A stretch of DNA of 63,944 nt, filler included, from Intoshia linei (Eukaryota > Animalia > Orthonectida), in NCBI GenBank assembly GCA_001642005.1. It is 8 parts of 8 records of this genome, joined end to end, with 100 filler letters (N's around TTAATTAATTAA, not from the genome) between each part and the next. Parts side by side here need not be neighbours in the genome. Positions count along the whole stretch, not along the records: positions 12,683 to 25,108 come from LWCA01001080.1; 7 more parts are not named here. One strand, 5' to 3'. The position numbers were made by a program, and so were the translations under genes. The notes beneath the pieces are model-generated. The model was given only the letters and a program-made list of their open reading frames with translations, was not told where the DNA came from and searched no databases. Positions 12,683 through 25,108 of this stretch are shown here, one piece after another; positions within the stretch are counted from its first letter, which is position 1, and every line of letters begins with the position of its first letter.

Positions 12683-14103
12683 AAAATAAAAAAATAACGC
12701 ACTTACAGTAAATATTCGTAAAGATATAATGATTTAAAATAAAGTTACAATAAAAACGACATTACTTATGAAACGACCTAATATATTGGCAACCCTCACA
12801 ATAATTTGGTAACAGATATAATATTCAAATTTTCCTTCAAAATCTGTCATGAAATTACTCTTATAAATGGTCATATCTGCTAAATTATATGCAATTCATA
12901 TATGCATTGAATAAAATTTAAATATAATTATCGAAAAATGTGCAATTAAGAATTTTATCATGAAAAAAAATTTCCCGAATATATTGTGAAAGATTAATTA
13001 AACTATTGCTTCTTAAAAATGACTTAAAAGTTACTTTAACAAAAAATATTTAATAAATTTTAGTATATTATGGAATCTTTGTATTGACCATATTCATCGC
13101 AAACATGACTTTATTTTTGCAAACATGATTAACAAGATCGTGAATGTCTTGTATTTGAATGAATTTATTATATTGTAAATAACCAGAATTTGATAAATTA
13201 AATCGTTAATAAAATCCAAAAAAATTGAGCTAGAAACAAATTTAAACAATTAAACTGTATAAATAAACATGGAGAACAGTATTATAAAAGCGGTAATACG
13301 TTTAAAAGCTCAAACGCCGATTTCTGGTAAAATAAAGTTCAGTTTTAATTTCTTAATAATATTTATACAGTGATATTTAAAATGACAAACGCAACTCGAA
13401 TAGATAGCGTTAAATATTTTTGGTTGCGAATTAGTTTTTCTATATTAAAATTACACACTTTTAGTGCTAATTGCCTTTGATTTTTTGATGAGTGTGACAC
13501 TCTACACTACAGTGCAGCCAAAAGCATCACAATTTTTGTGGATATGTATTATAATTTTGTAAATAATGTTTTTATATTGATTAATTCTGGTGGTTAATTT
13601 CGCCACTGTTTAAGTTTAATATACACTATTTTATAAGTAGTTTTTTGGAGTTTGAAAATTTACAGTACATGGTCTTTTGTTATAAAAGATTTCATATTTT
13701 CGCGTATTTTAATGTTGCATTACATAAAAATTTACTTTTTTATGACGCCGGTTAAGATTATATGTTAATTTGTAATTTTTTTTTGTAAATAGTCGTTGTT
13801 GTAAAAGATTTTGTTAAAATTATTTTATATATACTAATTCTTTTTTACCAAACTTTTAAAGGGTTTTCAAGATTTTTTTTACCAAACTTTCAAGGGGAGT
13901 TTTTAAGATTTTTTACCTTGATAAGCAGTGAATTTCATGGTATTTAAAATCATATTTTAAACTTAGAAAATATACAATATGAAATGTTAACAAAATGTAA
14001 ATGAACCATTCTCCAGCAAATAAAACAAATATTTCAATTTAATTTAATTTAAATTTAATTAATATCCTAGACTCATACTTATAGATAGACTTAAAATTCT
14101 CGT

Positions 14104-17100
14104 ATGACAGCGTGCAACATGGTTATTTGCACTATTTTACTATTTTGTCAACATTGGCGTAGTTATGGTGCATTCCGTTTGAGAATGTATTTTAAAATAT
14201 AGTATATTTTATTTATTTATGTCATAATATCTTAATAGAGCCTTATTATTAATTGTTCTATAATAATTTTGTAATATGCTGAACATATATGAATCAAACT
14301 AACAAACCACGTAAAAAAAACATGGTAGCATATAATTTAAATTTATGGTTTTTTTAAATTATGACAGAGAATGGCTCAAATACAATAAATATATAAATGA
14401 AATGATTAAAATGATGAAAAACAATTATAATACATATGTGCGTAATAATAATTTCTTATCCTTAACTATTTAGATAGTAATATTAATAAAATAACTTGTG
14501 TTATTGTGTAATTAATTTTGATTTTATTTTAGTTTGTAAATTATTTAAATACATTAATAAATAATATTACCAAATTGTATTACCAATATGATTCACCGAT
14601 TTGATAAAATTTGTACATTTATATTAATTTAATAATGATTATAATAAATATAGATTGTAAAATTATTTTAATATCATTAAAAAATTATCACGTGTGCCAT
14701 AGAAAGGAACGTGATGATTTTTATATTTTATAACGTGAAATGTTTCAGAGTATTAATTTAAATGGACCATAACTTTGAAAATGATGTGAAACCTATTTCA
14801 AATAAACAAATATACCTGTTTTATAATAATTAATTAGCGGCAAAATTTTGGGGTCGTTTATTTTTCATATTACCGCAGAAATTTTGCTTCCATTTTGATT
14901 CCTTACTCATTTCAATCATTTAATCATTAATTAAATTACAGTTAATGCATTGATATTATTACTTTATTGGATTTATATGGTTTTATATACAGGTCGCCAA
15001 AATAATTTTTTTGTTAACTTAAAATAATTTGCCAATCTACTTAATTTTTACTTTTGTTAATAAATGAATATGAAAATAATTGATATCTTTTTATAGCAAG
15101 TAATACCAATTTGATTGAAATTATATTCCCATATATTATTAAATAATTTAAAATTACATTAACTTAACAATTTTATTTCTATATTTCAGTTTGTAATTAA
15201 AATATATCATTCACAAAAATTGATTGCAATTAGCATTTCAGAAAATTATATATACATTTATTTTGAATTTAGATGGTAATATCTATTAATTTTTAAAATA
15301 CAATTATAGTCAGACCTATGTATCATTAAAATTAACCTTAAAGTTATTGAGGTGGTCATTGTATCGCAAATGGGAATCATGGTAGAGCTAAACCCCACCA
15401 GGGACCTACAGATAATCTATGGAAGTTTTATTATAGATTTTTCGATTTCAACATATTGATAACTTTTATGCGAATCGGAATTTTTTTGCTTGTTTTTGGG
15501 TCGGTTTTACACGGTTATATTTTATTAATGACTTCATCAAACATTTCAACTGAAATGTGAAAGAAATGACTTATATTGAAAAATATTTCATTAATGAGAT
15601 ATAAAAATAATATTAAACTTATTAGAAAAAATGAGTATTTTTATGTTTTTATAAATGATCGATTAAGTTGAATTTTTTTACTAACATTGGAAATAAGTAA
15701 AAAGAAAATATTAGATCTACTAATAAATTATGTCACTTTTAAATCCAATTTTAGTGAAGACTCCATATAATCACACTTTATATAAGAACATATATAGCAG
15801 ATGGGTCAAAGGATGGTCCGCGGGCCGCATGCGGCCCGTTACATCAAATTGAGGGGTCCGCGAAATTTTTTAGTAATATATTTTGAAAAACATTGATTTA
15901 CAGAAATATCATAATTACCACATTACCAAGCATTAATTTAAATTTTTTAAAAATAATTCTGTATTTGTGCAGTAATTATTCTCAACTTCTTACTTTTTGT
16001 ACATCACCATAATAATTCTAACTTTTTGAACCTTTTGTACCATTATCCTATACTTATATAAAGTTGAGATTAAAAGTTTAGGAACTTATTTTAAAGTTTA
16101 AGAATTTTAAGGTTGTCTTTAAGTTTGGTTCAAAAAAATTTCCTTAAAACCCTCTCCAAATTTAATTAAAAAAATGTCTAAAGAAACCCATAAAGTTGAT
16201 TCAAAAAAATTTTCTAAAACCCAAAAATAAAATGTAAATGAAAATTTTACACATTCTATACGAAATATACATAATATTCAATAATATACATAATAATGTA
16301 TATATAACGTAGAAGGTATATAATTTAATGTTAAATGTATGAATAATAAAAAATTTTTGACGGGTTCGACGCGTATGAATTGAAATATTTTATGTATGGT
16401 ATATATAAATATAATATTATATAATAATATATTTTATTTTAACGAAGATTGTAAAATTCTATTAATAATATTAATATACTTTTAATTTTAACGTTATAAA
16501 TAATATATTTATTATGAAACATTTAGTAAAAGGTTTTTTTACATAAAAAATAAAATGGAATGATAATATTTTATACATTAATTATAAGGCAAGGTTTTTC
16601 ACAATCCCACAACACTTTATTGGAATGATCGCCGTATGAAATACTGCTGATTAAAATGTGAAGTAAATTGAATTAGTGGATTCGAAATTACATTAATTTT
16701 TTTTACTGTTTCAGTTATATTTAAATATCATGGACACTACCAACTAAAAAATACCAGTCTTACAAAAATCAATCAGCCATTTTGCACTCAAAATTTTAAG
16801 AGCGATTTTGGAGAAATCTAGAAAGTTTATAAAGTGATACGAATGTATTAATTTTATTTATATTTTTCACAACTTTATTTTTTATTTTTTCGCGACTTGT
16901 GAATTATTAATTGTAAATTGTATCTTGAAAAACTTTGTTGTATATTGAAATATATAAAAATTTAATAAATTTAATTATAATTCAACTATAGCTGGTAATA
17001 TTACAGATGAGTAATTATATTAATTACAACATTAAGGAGGTAAAATACATTGTAGTATTATTAGAGTATTGTAATATTATGAATACCATAAATAAAGTGG

Positions 17101-20100
17101 TTTCTGTGAAATGTGTGTTATATGAATGTCTCACGAATAATATTTCATGTACTTTCCGCTTTGTTCAGTAATTTTCCTTTTTCATATACATATTGCACAA
17201 AATATTGCATTATGAATATCAATTGTAATAACTGGTTCTATGGAATTATTATGGAACAGAAATTACTTATTAATATTATAATTATTATTAATTATTATTA
17301 TTAATATGATCAATTGAAATATTATTAAATAAAACAGTTATAATTAAAAAATGATAATTTTATATTTTTACGTAAATAGTCATAAATTTAAAAGCATATT
17401 AAAAAGATAGTAAATAATTTAAATTGAAAGCAAATTATACTATAAAATGAAATTAAATAAAAAAATTAAATATTATTGACAGCAAGTAATCATAATTTGA
17501 TAAAATAGTTGTTTTTTAGTACATTAGCTGTCACTCCATTAGTTGGTTAATATTTAATTTACTGGATATATTGATACTTTTCTTATTTATTTATCAAAGT
17601 AAATTTTCCCTAAATCGTAAAATATTACATTAGCGTTAATTTTAAATATTAAGTTAAGTTGTATATTTGAATTGTTTTTAATTCGGATTCCCCTACCAGT
17701 AGCAGCGATCTACACATGTAAACACATGAAATCTCATACAGTTTTAACGAAATTTCATTTTATCATTTTTATAATAGCAAGTTATGTACGAACAAACCAA
17801 AGGATGTTTTAGTTGATTTGATAAAATTTGATGCCTTATTACATTATTTTTGAAATATATATGGATTTATTAATTTACTAATTGAGGATGGCATATATTA
17901 TACAATATACGTGTAGTAAATACAATTTAATAGATGGTAAATATTAAAAAAATATATTCATAATTTTAATTTAATAGCCCGTAAAATACATATATTTTAT
18001 TTTATAAATATAATCAATAAAAAATATATTAAAATTTTAGTTTGTAATTGATTTGAATTAAATTTTTATACAGTCTCACCTCCGTTTGAGCACCTTTTTT
18101 GCAAAGTGCCTCAAAATTACAGGTTTTATTATTTAGTAAATTGTCTAATTTTTGATTAACATGTAAATACATGCATTAATATTAAATAATTATATATGTA
18201 ATGATATGTATAATGTTATATACTATTTGTTGGTATTACAGTCGAACCCGATATAGGCTGGTATTTTCAGATAAATGCATAAATAAAATTTTTAATAAAA
18301 AAAATTCTGACAAATAATTAAATTAATCCTGAAATTAAATATATTAATATTATTGTAATTACAATTATGTATACTTAATTTTTTGACATAATTAAATAAA
18401 TTAAATTATTTTCTAATCTAGAAGATATATAACCAAAGGTAGTTACAATAGCGATACATTAAGCGGTCCACTTTTCGAAAAAAATTGTTGCTACTGTATG
18501 TAGAAATCAAGGACGTCAGAGGAGGCCAGCGAGGCCGAGCCTCCACTGAGTAAATTGATATTGAAAATGCAAACTTTTCTTAAAAAACAATTACATTTTT
18601 TACTTTAACATTTTAAAAATTACAATTATTATGAATTTAATTCAATACTAAGTTTAGCATTTTAAATAAATTATATTTTTTTTATTTTTAATAATAATAA
18701 TAATATTTATGTATTTTTAATAATAATAAGTTTTTTTTTGGATGGTTTTTTCTTTCTCTTGTCTTATTTACATTTCTATAATTTTTATGTAATTTTTTTG
18801 ATAATAATCCAACAACAGTGACATAGTATGCTTGAAATAATAAATAAATATAGCTTAAATTATTATTATATTATATTAAATTGATTTAATTAGATTTACA
18901 AAATGTTTAACCAAACAGTCGATAATTTCATATATATTGTTATTTTTGTTATAAATACTATAAAATCAACATAATACAGAAAAACTCCTCAAAATGCGAG
19001 TATACACTATAGCGAGGTTTGCCCGAACGGGGTCGAACTGTGAAATGAAAATATAATAAAAAATTTAAAAACCAAGCTGGTAATATTAAATTAGAAATAA
19101 TCTCAAATATACAATGCATTTTATAAAAATTTACATTTATATACCCATCAATATACTACATATAAATATACTTGTATAATGTATAATAATATTTTTATTA
19201 ATTTTAGCACGTAAATATTATTAAATGAATACTACATGTACTATGCAGTGGCAGGTCTAAAATTTTCAGCCAGGGGGGGGGGAGAAATAATTATTAGGGG
19301 ACTAAACTCATATTATGTATTTAAGTTTCAATTTTTATATTATGTTTATTAATATATGTCTATATATAATAATTTATATTTTTTTTCTAGTTTTCATTAT
19401 ACTACCTTTTCAACAACTGCATCAAAATCACAATTTTCGGCAAGTTCTTTTTCTGTTATCAACAACGTTAAGTAGGATAATTTAACTTAAACTGCTGTTA
19501 AACTCCGATAACAAATTAATATACATAAAACGTTAAAGAATCATAGTTCAATAAAAGTAATATAGTTTAATTTAATGGGCCTAGAAAATTTTTTTAATTT
19601 TACACAATGGTAATATACAAATAAAAATATTTTAGAGACACATTTGTCACACCAAGGGCCCCGCCCCCTTGCACCACCTAGATCCGCTACTGGTACTTAA
19701 TATGTATGTATTATTAGTATTTATTGATATGTTTAAAATCATTTTTTATACCTGTTAGTTTATCTGTTTTAGTGAGTATTGAAATACATTTATTTATATT
19801 TTATTTATTATTACTATATATAAGTAATACATTTTTATAATATAAATTTTAATAATTTTTAAATTTATTAGATTGTAAATACATTTTTTAATTATATAAA
19901 TGTTAATCTGAAATTCAGATCGTAAATTTTTTAATTGAAATGAATTGTATTATTATCTTTAGACATTTAATTTTATGAGAAAATTATTTAGAATTATGAT
20001 CATTTATTAGACAAAATGACATGGTTTAAATGATTGTGTATTTTAATTAGAATGTAAATTATAACTCAAAAATATTAAATGTATAATGTACATTATTTAT

Positions 20101-23100
20101 ACATTATTCAAAAGTCTATACATTTACGATAGTGCGTAAACCAAAAATTATTAAATTCATCATGAAAAATACTGTATTTGATTAAAATTTTATTATAGAC
20201 GGTATAAACAAATCTAGTTTCTTTATAAATCAAATACATGTAGTATACATTTTATAATTACTAAAATTTTACAGCTTGTATTTAAATTTCATTTCATTTT
20301 TTTAATTTCATGGAAATTATTTTAATTATATAAATTAGATAGTAAATACAAACATGAAATAATATTACATGTATATAATATATATACTATTATACTAATT
20401 ACAGGATGTAATTGAATACATTAAATAACTATACAAAAATTTAAATATACTTTAATAAAATTTCATCAAAATAGTACGTATTGTTCAAGATTATATTTTT
20501 TATTTTTTATAACTTTTCTAATATATATTTTAAAAATAATAGAAGGTATATCATCAATACATTGCGATGCCGTGTCAAGATGGAACTGTCTAGATTATTT
20601 TAATTATCAAATTAAAGCGTGAATTGCCTTATTAATCATTGCATTTTATTGTATATGTATATGAAGGTGTGGGTCATTAAAGTTGGGTATTTAAGTCAAT
20701 TAATGAAAATGTAACATTTAACGATATTCAGACGAGTTCCGATGCAATAAGACAATTGATGTACGTTAATGTAATTAAATTTAAAATTATTCCATTTAGC
20801 GAGTAATATTTATTATTTTAATTATCAAATTAAAGCGTGAATTGCCTTATTAATCATTGCATTGTATTGTATATGTATATGAAGGTGTGGGTCATTAAAG
20901 TTGGGTATTTAAGTCAATTAATGAAAATGTAACATTTAACGATATTCAGACGAGTTCCGATGCAATAAGACAATTGATGTACGTTAATGTAATTAAATTT
21001 AAAATTATTCCATTTAGCGAGTAATATTTATTATTTTAATGTTACCATTCGTGCATTTACAATTACATTTTAACGATTAAAAATATTGATTTATTTATTT
21101 CATTTAGCTGGTAATTTGAATATTGTATTAAACTGATTTATAATAATGGTTCTAAAATAATATTATTTATTTCTATTTATTATCTATTTATTATAAATAA
21201 TTGATAATTCATCAGCTCGTATGTTCCATTGTTTCAATAATATTAAATATATTTTAATTACATTCAATCCCAGGACTGATCTCACAAATATTACAAATTA
21301 TATAAAACTTATTATTAGAGTTTATTAGTATTTTGTCAAGGTTTAATTTTTAGTATTTTTTTGAGTATTTTAAAAAAAATTTATATGGTTTTTTGGGGTA
21401 TTTTTCTTATTTGGTATTGTGACGTCATTTATGGGAATGACTAGTTTAAATATAAATTAAATATGTTTATAGATAAAAGTAATTTAATTAACAATTTGTA
21501 AACTCTTATTGTATGTGTACATTAATTTACATTAATTAATAATAAATAAAATTAAAAATAATTACGAACCCATGAAATTTTTTAATGTACCTTTTAAAAT
21601 GTAATTTTTATGAAAAGAGAATAAAATGCCAAACAGGTTTATAAATATGATGAAAACGTTAGAATCAGAGAAGGTTATGTACATAATATATATTCTGATA
21701 TATATTATTATAATAATATGTATTTTCTAAAATAATAAAAATGACAATAAAAAAAGCAAAAATTTTCAAATTAAATTTTATAATTTGACGAATAATATAA
21801 TAATATTTTTTGTACGTTTCCATGATAACTTGTTTAATTTTTATTCAAAAAAACGGTAAATTGAACACTAATACTGGTACAGCCTGCAGCATCAGGTATG
21901 AAGATAATTACATATAGTATGTTAATTTTAACGTTTATACATATAGAACGTAAACTTTTATATTAATACTTTTTGTATTAAAATTAGTGTTATACATTAT
22001 ATATTAATGTCAATTCCTAATGTGGTTAACATGTAGCAATTTATATTTAAAAATAACTAATCCAAAATAAAATTTAAAATTACAAATTTATTGATTTTGA
22101 GAATAGATGGTATAAAACTTTTATATTTTATTATTTGTATTTAAATTTATAAATATAGCTGGTTCGTGATTTAAATATTTAAGTCAAATTTACTTTAAAA
22201 CTTAATTTGTATAATAATATAAAAATTAGAATGTATGCATTTTATTTTAACCAATTTAAAATATATTATTGTATTTTTAATATATATATTTTCAACAATA
22301 CCATAAACATGTAGTAGGTAATAATTATACATCACCTACTTATATTATTATATTGCATTTATAATTGAAATTGAAATATAAAATTTAGTTCGTAATCAAT
22401 TTAAAATATATGATTTAACACTTTTCAAAAGGAACTTAATGTAAACATGGGGCCTTTGGTTTCGATTACGGAACATGGGATCCAAATTGAACGATTTAGT
22501 TAATTTTATAAAAATATAGTTGGTATATTATATTCACATGTACATATGTATATGTTTATGTCAATATATAACCATATTAATGTATCGTGTACGATATCCT
22601 ACTAAATATGTAAATTTATAGCCGGTAAATGTTTATCAATATATCATTTTCAATATTTTAATAATATTAATATTAATTAAATTATTGTATCGGTTAACCC
22701 ATTTTAATTATTAAAATATAAAATGTTATGTTATATATTTTATATTACTTTTTAAAATGATTAGCTTGTAAAATAAAAAATATTAAATATAATTGTAATT
22801 GTATCCTTAAATCGTAAAATTATTAAATATCTAAAATAAAACAGATTGTAATACCCATATAAATACATACATTGATGAAAAATCACTTATAAACTCAATT
22901 ATAATAGTGAGTAAATTTTAAAACTTTATTATTTTAACATGTAAATAAAATAATATAATATTATAAAAAAATTTAAAAATAATGTGATTGAAATCAGATT
23001 ATTATCATTATAAAATTATTACTTAATTTTTTTAGTTGGTAATTTTTTAATATAAATAAATATAAACTATCATAGTGATTAATATGGTTAAAAAATCTTC

Positions 23101-24337
23101 CCACTTTTATTATACTTGCTGTATCTTAATTAATACATTCAAATATAGCATGTAAAAAAAATTTAATTTTTTTTAATTATTTTGTTTATAATGTTTTTCA
23201 TGTTTCAGTGAGTAAAGTTAACTGAAATCTATATTCACATTTTAAATAAATTTTCATTGAAAATCTAATTTTACCTATCTAGATGGTGATATATTGTTAT
23301 ATAAATTATATACAAATTTATATGTACGTGAAATGTATACATTCCACGGGAAAGTCGTAGAATGTGTAAAATTTTCATTTATATTTTAATTTTAGTTTGA
23401 TTTTGCGTTTTTTAGAAATTTTTTTTTGAACCAAACTTTCAACAGGGGTTTCTAAAAAATTTTTATTTAAATCAAACTTTAAGGTGGTTTTTAGGAATTT
23501 TTTTAGAACCAACTTTCAATATGGGTTTTTAACAAAATTTTTTTTAAACCAAACTTTAAGAGGGGTTATAGGAATTTTTTTTTGAACCATACTTTCAAGG
23601 AGGTTTTTAAGATTTTTTTTGAACCAACTTTCAACAGGGGTTTCTAAGTAATTTTTTTTGAATCAAACTTGAAACAACCACCTTGAAAGTATGGTTCAAA
23701 AAAAATTTCTAAAACCAAAATTAAAATATATAAATGAAAATTTTACAAATTCTACGACTTTCCTATAGAATGTGTACATTTCAGTTTTACACATTTTATA
23801 CGACATATCTATATGGTTGTTGAAGGTTGATCAAAATGTATTATTTTCATAAGATTTAGTAAATATAAAATATCATTTTCTTCATAATTTTTAATTGTTC
23901 AATATTGTTCAAATCCATGCAAATTATAAACTGACGGTAATATATACAATGTATATTATACATGTATGTTTATTATTAATACTTGTGGTAACATTTAAAA
24001 TTTGGTAGCATATCTATACTTTCCAACTACATACATTTATTTAGTAGAAAACTCCGATGGTGTTAATATTTAATTTTTAAATGTAGAAAGTAATTTTATA
24101 ATTTTAAATATATTGATTCATATTGCATGATATCATTATAATAAACCTTTTACTTTGTTTTTTTAGGATATATTACAATCATATATTTAATTGCCGATTA
24201 GCTAGTAAAATTCACAAGTTTTTATTAAATTTTTTTATTATTATTCTAATTGTTTCTAATTTATTATAGTTCCAAGACGTAACATATTGAAACTTATTAT
24301 TTAGAAATATAATTTATTAAATATATAATTGTAGTAC
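14104..24337 (+). CDS. Putative micro-exon gene: two ordinary exons (14104-14186, 14368-14441), then about 50 three-nt exons plus a 6-nt (21473-21478) and a 9-nt (24270-24278) exon, all phase 1; probably secreted; 3' end not found
   Basis: AG|NNN|GT units (mostly TAG/CAG acceptors, GTA-type donors) at exon starts 14474,14533,14654,15097,15190,15273,16313,16992,17037,17483,17543,17778,17934,17978,18041,19077,19208,19773,19872,19919,20051,20133,20199,20275,20339,20405,20475,20543,20800,21018,21108,21216,21947,22107,22159,22230,22315,22389,22520,22622,22765,22845,22908,23036,23149,23209,23283,24087,24202,24335. Joined: MTACNMVICTILLFCQHWRSYGAFRLRIEWLKYNKYINEMIKMMKNNYNTYV-HIYSIYEAGAIANALSALNYQLHAYRLQATTAHKKHAELVLAAYLIALNETIPRL... 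Confidence 0.75.
19246..19692. mobile_element. hAT-type MITE inside the micro-exon gene
   Basis: TIRs cagtggcaggtcta / tagatccgctactg; partial flanking direct repeat gtact. Confidence 0.6.
20594..21040 (+). repeat. 218-bp tandem duplication containing the CGA micro-exon
   Basis: Two nearly identical copies with period 218 (CGA at 20800 and 21018); at least one substitution (gcatttta / gcattgta). Confidence 0.9.
23328..23783. mobile_element. Foldback/MITE element with long TIRs and an internal ~40-bp minisatellite
   Basis: About 75-bp inverted arms (tgaaatgtatacattcc...tagaatgtgtacatttca) around repeats of ttttttgaaccaaactttcaa-ggggttt. Fragments also at about 13840-13915 and 16060-16265. 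Confidence 0.7.
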
Positions 24338-24440
24338 GTAATCTTTTTATTTATAGCGTATTCATTATACAAAATGTTTAATTATGACAATGACCTTAAC
24401 ATGTTTGTATCCTGTTTTAAATGTGGAAATGTCTAAATTA

Positions 24441-25108
24441 CACAGTACAACATTTTTCGAAAAATTTCAAAATAGATTTTTCTAACCTATATCGTTTTGT
24501 AGCTGGTATTCTTGTGATTCGAATAGTGTGGGTCACTTTATCAAGTCAGATCGACGTTTCGAGATATAATAGGAATAAAATACCATAATTACAAGAAAGT
24601 TATATTGATTGTGATCTAAAACCCACTATTCGACCTATAAAAAAGTTATGGATTCAACCAAAAATTTGGCTTGTGGCAATATACGTATGTATCTACCATA
24701 GAGAGAAAAAAATTAACAAAATTTAAAGTATTTTAGAATTTAGCCTGTGGCATTCCTCTTATATCTTTAGAAAAATTAGCATTTTTGAATAAATTTCTAC
24801 TTTCATGAGTGATATACATCCAAGAGTCTACTTTTTATTCTAACTTTACGACATACTTAAATGACCTCCATGCATTTAATTCATCAGGACATAGACTGTT
24901 TTCAAATGTTTTAGACATAAAAAGTTGTTTGATTTCTGGTCCATTTAATACTCCTGCCAACAATTTCATTTTCGATAAATGTGGCAGAGCACTTGTTAAA
25001 GTAATACGTGGTTGAGAAGGGTCGAGAGATCTCTTTCTTAAACATTTTAAAAACTGAGCATAATCCGATTTTTAAGTGTAATGGAGGTAACAATATCCTA
25101 TCAAATTT
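24441..25108 (-). mobile_element. Degenerate DNA-transposon transposase remnant, probably CMC/Chapaev3-like
   Basis: LPPLHLKIGL motif followed by a frameshifted MKLLAGVLNGPEIKQLL...NAWRSFKYVV segment; CAC-type terminus at 24441. Superfamily assignment is from recall. Confidence 0.55.

Follow-up and report, generated by a model that had tools for sequence, protein, structure and literature searches.

The described genes closest in kind to the one considered here are the bicycle and cassette effector genes of aphids and the micro-exon genes (MEGs) of schistosomes. Bicycle genes, among whose marks is salivary-gland expression in Aphidomorpha or Coccoidea, occur in aphids, phylloxerans and scale insects and have also been described under the name of pea-aphid cassette effector genes (KQY/KHI). 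Bicycle and cassette genes span 12-87 kb, have exons of at least 6 bp and often encode CYC (Cys-Tyr-Cys) motifs (PMC9168663; 10.1101/2020.10.28.359562; PMC7495047), some classifier-identified bicycle homologues being without CYC (PMC9168663). Bicycle genes have on average ~17 exons separated by long introns (10.1101/2020.10.28.359562), and nearly all their internal exons begin at the second codon position (PMC9168663). In KQY1a, 37 exons of 6-416 bp are spread over 45.7 kb (PMC7495047). Schistosoma MEGs encode secreted products, and symmetric micro-exons make up most of their coding sequence, with exon sizes of 3-81 bp (PMC10526429). Here we analysed a candidate gene whose exons would, for the most part, be exactly 3 nucleotides (nt) long. 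It lies in a 63,944-nt stretch of DNA from the orthonectid Intoshia linei (assembly GCA_001642005.1), hereafter the window, which consists of eight parts of the assembly joined end to end. The analysis covered the part at 12683-25108 of the window (LWCA01001080.1), whose G+C content is ~21% throughout. The original prediction, made from the sequence alone, had proposed at 14104-24337 an extreme MEG built from about 50 consecutive 3-nt exons.

Two further phenomena are relevant. Hatton 1998, Burnette 2005 and Duff 2015 are said to have described ratchet points in long introns of Drosophila, at which an acceptor is paired with a donor and which are used sequentially, each regenerating a 5' splice site. 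These ratchet points are AG/GT sites without an exon between the two signals; they are spaced by kilobases and contribute no sequence to the mRNA. Isolated 3-nt micro-exons are documented in animals, in RPS24, MAP4K5 and a bee elav-like gene (PMC12207440, PMC8632122, PMC8553928). Our literature search returned no gene with dozens of consecutive 3-nt exons, which, its coverage being incomplete, is absence of evidence; it agrees with the original prediction, whose author knew of none. The background given there has to be amended on two points: the size of Schistosoma MEG exons, put at roughly 6-36 nt, is now quoted as 3-81 bp (PMC10526429), and the picture of prior art has to take in the exons of pea-aphid cassette effector genes, which go down to 6 bp (PMC7495047).

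We counted the motif AG-N{k}-GTA for k from 0 to 15 on both strands. At k=3 the + strand carried 50 matches, against 3-9 matches at each of the other values of k, and the minus strand carried 3-10 matches at every k. The more restrictive motif YAGNNNGTA occurred 48 times (45 on the + strand and 3 on the minus strand), against 5.36 times on average and at most 11 times in 100 dinucleotide-preserving shuffles, and variants differing by one letter (YAANNNGTA, YAGNNNATA and others) were without strand bias. When acceptor-donor pairs were searched with position-weight matrices, 37 pairs were recovered at k=3 on the + strand, against 0-3 at other values of k; other exon sizes were not found up to k=40, and the minus strand had no k=3 pair. 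The units thus reach about ten times the number expected by chance, all on one strand, and this excess is real and far beyond chance; chance matches should account for ~3-5 of the 49 strict units. The first unit stands directly after a putative exon donor at 14441 and the last one ends at 24505, with no YAGNNNGTA match in the part upstream of 14471, where the first unit (exon 14474-14476) begins. The results below are based on an objective set, the 49 AGNNNGTA units after 14441, taken with no hand selection. The earlier count of about 50 units on the + strand was therefore borne out, and so was the test that the original prediction had set for itself, a peak specific to k=3 and to one strand (50 matches against 3-10 elsewhere). 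The region had also been described as devoid of any recognisable open reading frame (ORF), and indeed we found none above 68 aa in the part. Rfam and tRNA scans of it gave nothing above threshold. Strand composition skews vanished when the units were masked and are uninformative.

The units look like exons set between introns, as judged by four independent features that were not part of the search pattern: the base before the AG, an AG-free zone, a floor on spacing and the divergence of the flanks. The base before the AG was T in 37 units, C in 8, A in 4 and G in none, while donor position +4 was A in 38 and T in 11, never C or G, so that all donors read GTAA or GTAT. Positions -15 to -2 contained 0.06 AG per unit, compared with 0.43 for positions drawn at random from the region, a seven-fold depletion, and the nearest upstream AG was at a median distance of 55 nt for the units, against 15 nt for other AGs. 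In the dense half of the array (19773-23211), a single spacing out of 27 was shorter than 60 nt, and none of 20000 random placements was as extreme. The inferred introns have a median length of 105 nt, 32 of the 49 falling within 45-150 nt. Repeats of inserted elements aside, the repeat analysis detected no extended similarity between introns except for two duplications of 218 nt and 29 nt; the units were not alignable head to tail and do not form a satellite or a minisatellite. The conservation of the motif while the flanks diverged argues for selection on splice signals. The sequence-level expectations attached to a chain of 3-nt exons (spacing of three, one strand, YAG, GTAA or GTAT, AG exclusion and spacing floor) were thus all recovered in the DNA, whereas the splicing itself, proposed in the original prediction, is what we infer from them.

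Two putative ordinary exons precede the array on the + strand. Putative exon 1 (14104-14186) starts with an ATG and would encode a signal-peptide-like N-terminus, with a hydrophobic core and, after it, small residues at -3 and -1 (S-Y-G/A), as judged by eye; it ends at the donor AT/GTATTT, with 2 nt carried into exon 2. Putative exon 2 (14368-14441, 74 nt) is bounded by the acceptor ...gacag/ and the donor C/GTAATA and would carry 1 nt (C) into the array. Once joined, the two exons translate without a stop. Neither of them has a Pfam match, and a phmmer search with exon 1 (32 aa) against 1.84e9 protein representatives returned no real relative, only one spurious repeat protein. If the donor at 14441 is unused, the frame ends at the TAG at 14471-14473, which gives an alternative product of 62 aa; this TAG doubles as the acceptor for the first of the 3-nt units.

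Concatenation of the 49 strict triplets produced 4 stops with no base carried, 3 with two bases carried and 0 with one base carried, and the open phase is the one handed over by exon 2 (C at 14441). The statement in the original prediction that phases 0 and 2 contain stops and phase 1 is open thus holds for the objective set, while its peptide differs from ours at several places because weak units had been added or dropped by the reader. For triplets of background composition, the only strict null among those used, this phase was open in 0.9% of cases. As support for coding the open frame is modest. The composition of the triplets is uneven, with positions 1 and 3 departing from background (p=3e-6 and 2.6e-5; GC 37% and 49%, respectively) and position 2, the wobble base in the open phase, remaining at background (GC 18%, p=0.38). 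Positions 1 and 3 of the triplets correspond in this phase to codon positions 2 and 1, and the composition fits coding in the open phase, as supportive evidence only. Conceptual translation of the 49 triplets yields no cysteine.

We consider it probable, from these sequence features, that serial splicing joins the units into a coding mRNA, and the region from 14104 to about 24500 on the + strand most likely corresponds to one transcription unit containing a micro-exon chain. We infer that the array is transcribed, spliced and translated and that its product is secreted. In such a gene, the two ordinary exons would encode a signal-peptide-like N-terminus and about 30 further residues, and would be followed by some 45 exons of exactly 3 nt bounded by a U2-type acceptor (an A/T-rich tract, an AG-free zone and YAG) and a U2-type donor (GTAA or GTAT), most introns being 57-165 nt long. 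The first two bases of each micro-exon would end one codon and the third would open the next one, and the chain would add ~45-49 residues to a small secreted protein. A 3-nt exon should leave no room for U2AF/U2 at its acceptor beside U1 at its donor, so that exon definition could not apply; with introns of 60-150 nt, the splice sites would instead be paired across the intron. Such pairing is established for short introns in insects and in other small-intron genomes. The introns would be removed in order, the triplet just joined providing the last three exonic positions (-3 to -1) for the donor that follows. Recursive splicing would be similar, except that here three bases are retained at each step. 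Since all units are 3 nt long and have equal phase on both sides, skipping any subset of them would keep the frame and alter only the junction codon; variable products made by unit skipping are possible, as a speculation.

As for its origin, the array may have grown by tandem duplication of intron-plus-triplet units. A 218-nt perfect tandem duplication (20594-21029, +, 100% identity, 2.1 copies) contains one CGA unit per copy (20800-2 and 21018-20), so that an array can grow by doubling one intron-plus-exon unit, if the duplication is not an assembly artefact, which it may be. Transposon insertions would later have lengthened the introns of the 5' half.

To look for similar arrays elsewhere, we scanned metagenome contigs for three TAG-N3-GTAA units 45-75 nt apart, and 120 loci were returned. 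Most of them were (GTAA)n microsatellites or satellites with one invariant triplet. The false positives comprised microsatellites in termite-gut contigs with dozens of AGNNNGTA matches (L038, L034, L048, L057, L072, L021 and others) and invariant-triplet satellites (L089, L091, L105, L075 and L118). Since both kinds of repeat match the k=3 motif, genome-wide scans must mask them.

Chains read by eye from the sequence were obtained in four loci, L083, L011, L051 and L097. In L083 (contig Ga0169931_10021451, 291-2140, +), an ATG exon of 13 codons is followed by ~55 predicted 3-nt exons, with additional single exons of 21, 9 and 6 nt and introns of 24-36 nt of the form GTA...YAG. This chain is in phase 0 throughout and has no stop, an apparent TAA being an overlap artefact in a GTAAGTA donor. 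The same contig contains two long standard-code ORFs of 480 and 598 aa with no Pfam match. In L097 (contig Ga0137392_10011787, about 4890-2370, minus strand), 35 units of the form YAG-NNN-GT(A/G)AGT have varying triplets and are separated by introns of ~80 nt, clear paralogues of one another. Phase 0 is open along the chain, which stands between ordinary exons at 5137-5029 and 2319-2269 with phase-0 junctions. L097 thus appears, from its sequence, to be a young array produced by tandem duplication of an intron plus a triplet. Pfam and PDB searches with the ordinary exons of L097 and the ORFs of L083 did not identify the genes. L011 (contig Ga0194116_10020356, 2790-3900, +) combines predicted exons of 3, 6 and 9 nt with introns of ~27 nt and has one in-frame TAA, which suggests either an organism reading TAA as sense or a misread unit. 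L051 (minus strand), with 14% G+C, packs 88 units into 3.2 kb at a spacing of ~31 nt. Read as codons, these units give a K/E/N/I-rich sequence, and the predicted introns are ~27 nt long, about the size also seen in L083 and L011.

L051 has counterparts in L003, L028, L031 and L106 (contigs JAEEGJ/JAEEGK/JAEEGL..., Ga0256407...). These five loci have 14-21% GC and contain runs of AG-NNN-GTA 26-33 nt apart with many different triplets. Judging by appearance, they are further cases of this architecture, from organisms whose introns are tiny.

The chains of L083 and L097 are in frame with ordinary flanking exons. Taken as predicted, these contigs show runs of codon-sized exons as a recurring sequence architecture in different eukaryotes, and indicate tandem duplication of an intron plus its triplet as one way in which these runs can arise, as the 218-nt duplicate of the I. 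linei array also does. That unrelated eukaryotic contigs carry comparable chains adds to the credibility of the architecture. We lean, by a little, towards considering the I. linei array as ~45 consecutive one-codon exons (split 2+1) spliced in series, and as one case of a wider architecture that has remained undescribed.

Several observations weigh against a serially spliced coding array. Exons 1 and 2 are themselves only a model, and no transcript-derived protein with the exon-1 N-terminus was found among the 1.84e9 protein representatives. The donors are weak by the usual animal consensus, with G at position +5 in 2 of the 49 units. Four of the inferred introns are only 32-44 nt long, those before units 14474 (32 nt), 17037 (42 nt), 17978 (41 nt) and 19919 (44 nt), the first of them (14442-14473) being the shortest in the array; these four units are the likeliest to be false. 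The phase that is open in the observed chain was also open in 7.5% of triplet-order permutations and in 11% of position-matched random chains, and the composition of the outer bases of the triplets could stem from donor -3/-1 preferences as well as from coding. Finally, a terminal exon and a polyadenylation site were not singled out by the terminal-exon search, which returned many equally possible candidates, with several acceptors followed by short open stretches. One candidate terminal exon (24270-24302, +) has a T-rich acceptor, follows a 65-nt intron after unit 24202-4 and contains 11 codons then TAG, with ATTAAA at about 24315; its use would mean that units 24335 and 24503 match by chance.

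The array might alternatively carry real splice signals and lie in a long intron or in a non-coding part of a transcript, the predicted protein not being the product; we regard this as unlikely, if still deserving serious attention. The units would then be alternative, partly skipped or stepwise (recursive-like) intermediates, or a regulatory device, with some or none of the triplets translated. The significance of the open frame becomes weak when the composition of the triplets is taken into account, and an in-frame stop (14471-3) is met if the exon-2 donor is skipped, but the sole stop-free phase is precisely the one delivered by exon 2, and the wobble-like composition of the triplets fits coding. 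Stepwise removal of a long intron agrees poorly with the array, since known recursive sites have zero-length exons whereas k=0 is at background here (7 on the + strand against 6 on the minus strand), and since a spacing of ~100 nt would be useless for that purpose. Every unit being 3 nt long, any subset keeps the frame, and the ordinary exons flanking L097 are also in frame with the whole array skipped; the chain of L083, by contrast, extends an ATG exon in frame and without stops, and includes exons of 6, 9 and 21 nt. The existence of many equally possible 3' ends is also in keeping with a non-coding array.

We hold it to be quite improbable that the array is a decaying relic, either of a former micro-exon gene or of a formerly homogeneous minisatellite containing an acceptor and a donor, whose expression has been lost. 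The 5' half is broken by several inserted elements and its units are sparse, as a relic would have it, and L097 indicates that such arrays can be young tandem repeats with introns still alike. In the I. linei array, however, the flanks have diverged beyond recognition and yet 45-49 units retain YAG, GTA, the AG-free zone and the spacing floor, although neutral decay should erode the motif as fast as the flanks. The lack of a transcript-derived protein among the 1.84e9 representatives would agree with lost expression, but the reading phase has gained no stop along its 49 codons.

A motif unrelated to splicing (a chance or compositional effect, a protein-binding motif or footprints of mobile-element target sites) is very improbable and largely refuted: T/A-rich contexts arise easily at ~21% GC and (GTAA)n microsatellites can yield many AGNNNGTA matches, as in the termite-gut locus L038, but no shuffle attained a quarter of the observed count, one-letter variants and the minus strand were at background, the array has no microsatellite or satellite structure, consecutive triplets differ, which leaves no place for target-site duplications, and both the AG-exclusion zone and the floor on spacing are what introns specifically predict.

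Four more specific candidates were considered and rejected. Target-site duplications of mobile elements are incompatible with the differences between consecutive triplets, and Introner-type intron families with the fact that the introns are unrelated to each other. The ends are GTA...YAG and not TA-bounded, unlike the boundaries of internal eliminated sequences of ciliates, and there are no /GTATCCTT donors as in U12-type introns.

The putative micro-exons of the serially spliced array are unevenly distributed along the + strand. The sparse 5' half (14474-19210) contains 17 strict AG-NNN-GTA units, with exons at 14474-6, 14533-5, 14654-6, 15097-9, 15190-2, 15273-5, 16313-5, 16448-50, 16992-4, 17037-9, 17407-9, 17483-5, 17934-6, 17978-80, 18041-3, 19077-9 and 19208-10. 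The dense half (19773-23211) contains 28 strict units, at 19773-5, 19872-4, 19919-21, 20051-3, 20133-5, 20199-201, 20275-7, 20339-41, 20405-7, 20475-7, 20543-5, 20800-2, 21018-20, 21108-10, 21216-8, 21947-9, 22107-9, 22230-2, 22315-7, 22389-91, 22520-2, 22622-4, 22765-7, 22845-7, 22908-10, 23036-8, 23149-51 and 23209-11. Four strict units form the tail (24087-24505), at 24087-9, 24202-4, 24335-7 and 24503-5. Two candidates with weaker donors, 22159-61 (GTT) and 23283-5 (GTG), both on the + strand, are compatible with the frame, while the inclusion of the + strand candidates 16822-4 and 21918-20 would introduce stops. The thirty units placed by the original prediction in 19773-23285 are thus reached only with 22159 and 23283, and its warning that some omitted weak candidates would add stops applies to 16822 and 21918 and not to 22159 and 23283, which fit the frame. 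Candidate 21918-20 belongs to a 29-nt tandem duplication (21909-21969, +), in which the good unit 21947-9 (donor GTAAAC) is accompanied by this degenerate copy (donor GTTAAT). The two copies are 26 nt apart, too close for joint use, and the degenerate one would add the stop.

The long gaps of the array contain G+C-richer, repeat-like inserts, which fit introns stretched by transposons. An insert resembling a miniature inverted-repeat transposable element (23329-23783, no strand assigned), with 59-nt terminal inverted repeats (90% complementary) and internal tandem repeats of 38/77 nt, lies within one long intron of the array, and fragments related to it were found upstream of exon 1 (13839-13914) and in another long intron (16100-16260). 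A possible second inserted element (19246-19694, likewise without strand), with G+C-rich imperfect inverted ends, occupies the 562-nt intron before the dense half; local alignment of its ends gave ~75% identity over 37 nt, which is weak. In the 1037-nt gap of the array, a G+C-rich and partly palindromic stretch (15800-15865, GGTCCGCGGGCCGCATGCGGCCCG...GGGGTCCGCG) is probably another small inserted element.

Beyond the array, a degenerate and frame-shifted ORF fragment (24838-25071, minus strand) extends to the edge of the part at 25108. It has no Pfam match and no homologue within the length range searched. It may resemble the transposon-derived ORFs common in animals.

If spliced as we read it, this would be the most extreme micro-exon gene of which we found any trace, most of its coding sequence arriving in steps of three bases, with ~100 nt of intron for each codon. 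It would imply that 3-nt exons can be used constitutively and one after another, a point relevant to the pairing of splice sites where exon definition is physically impossible, and that a spliceosome relying on intron definition meets no practical lower limit of exon size. A huge diversity of peptides could be produced by skipping units. Gene families, possibly of secreted effectors, could be missing from annotations, because gene finders need exon-length statistics and segments of 3 nt are too short for read aligners to place. Genome-wide searches can use as a simple criterion a k=3 peak of YAG-N3-GTA on one strand, together with an intron-sized spacing floor. The metagenome matches suggest that the architecture arose more than once, so that its origin by unit duplication and its possible benefit (rapid change of length and sequence, or combinatorial skipping) become testable questions.

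Among the known systems, bicycle and cassette genes have a first exon that encodes a signal peptide, followed by many very small exons. The array resembles them in the small exons, and would do so in the first exon as well if its N-terminus, signal-peptide-like by eye, is a real secretion signal. It also resembles bicycle genes in that its exons would begin at the second codon position, one base being carried over, a result that depends on the model of exons 1 and 2. Both are difficult to annotate, the members of the bicycle family sharing poor sequence similarity. It differs from them in that its exons are all exactly 3 nt, with ~45 in a row, hence smaller and more uniform, in that its introns are short (median 105 nt), and in that the micro-exon part has no CYC motif and no cysteine. 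With Schistosoma MEGs it shares the symmetry of all its units, whose length is a multiple of 3 so that skipping keeps the frame, whereas MEG exons vary in size, their introns reach up to 5 kb and no run of 3-nt exons dozens long has been described in them. The likeness to MEGs is one of architecture only, and no sequence relationship is expected; the part analysed, at 21% GC, is also what we take to be unlike a schistosome genome. The designation as an extreme MEG can thus be kept for the architecture and not as demonstrated membership of the schistosome family. Isolated 3-nt micro-exons show that the spliceosome can include an exon of this size, although they are single, often alternative, and located in ordinary genes, where they do not make up the bulk of the coding sequence. 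In contrast to ratchet points, the array has k=0 matches at background (7 on the + strand, 6 on the minus strand) and a tenfold enrichment at k=3. We rate it as an extreme form of the micro-exon gene kind, and as a new one.

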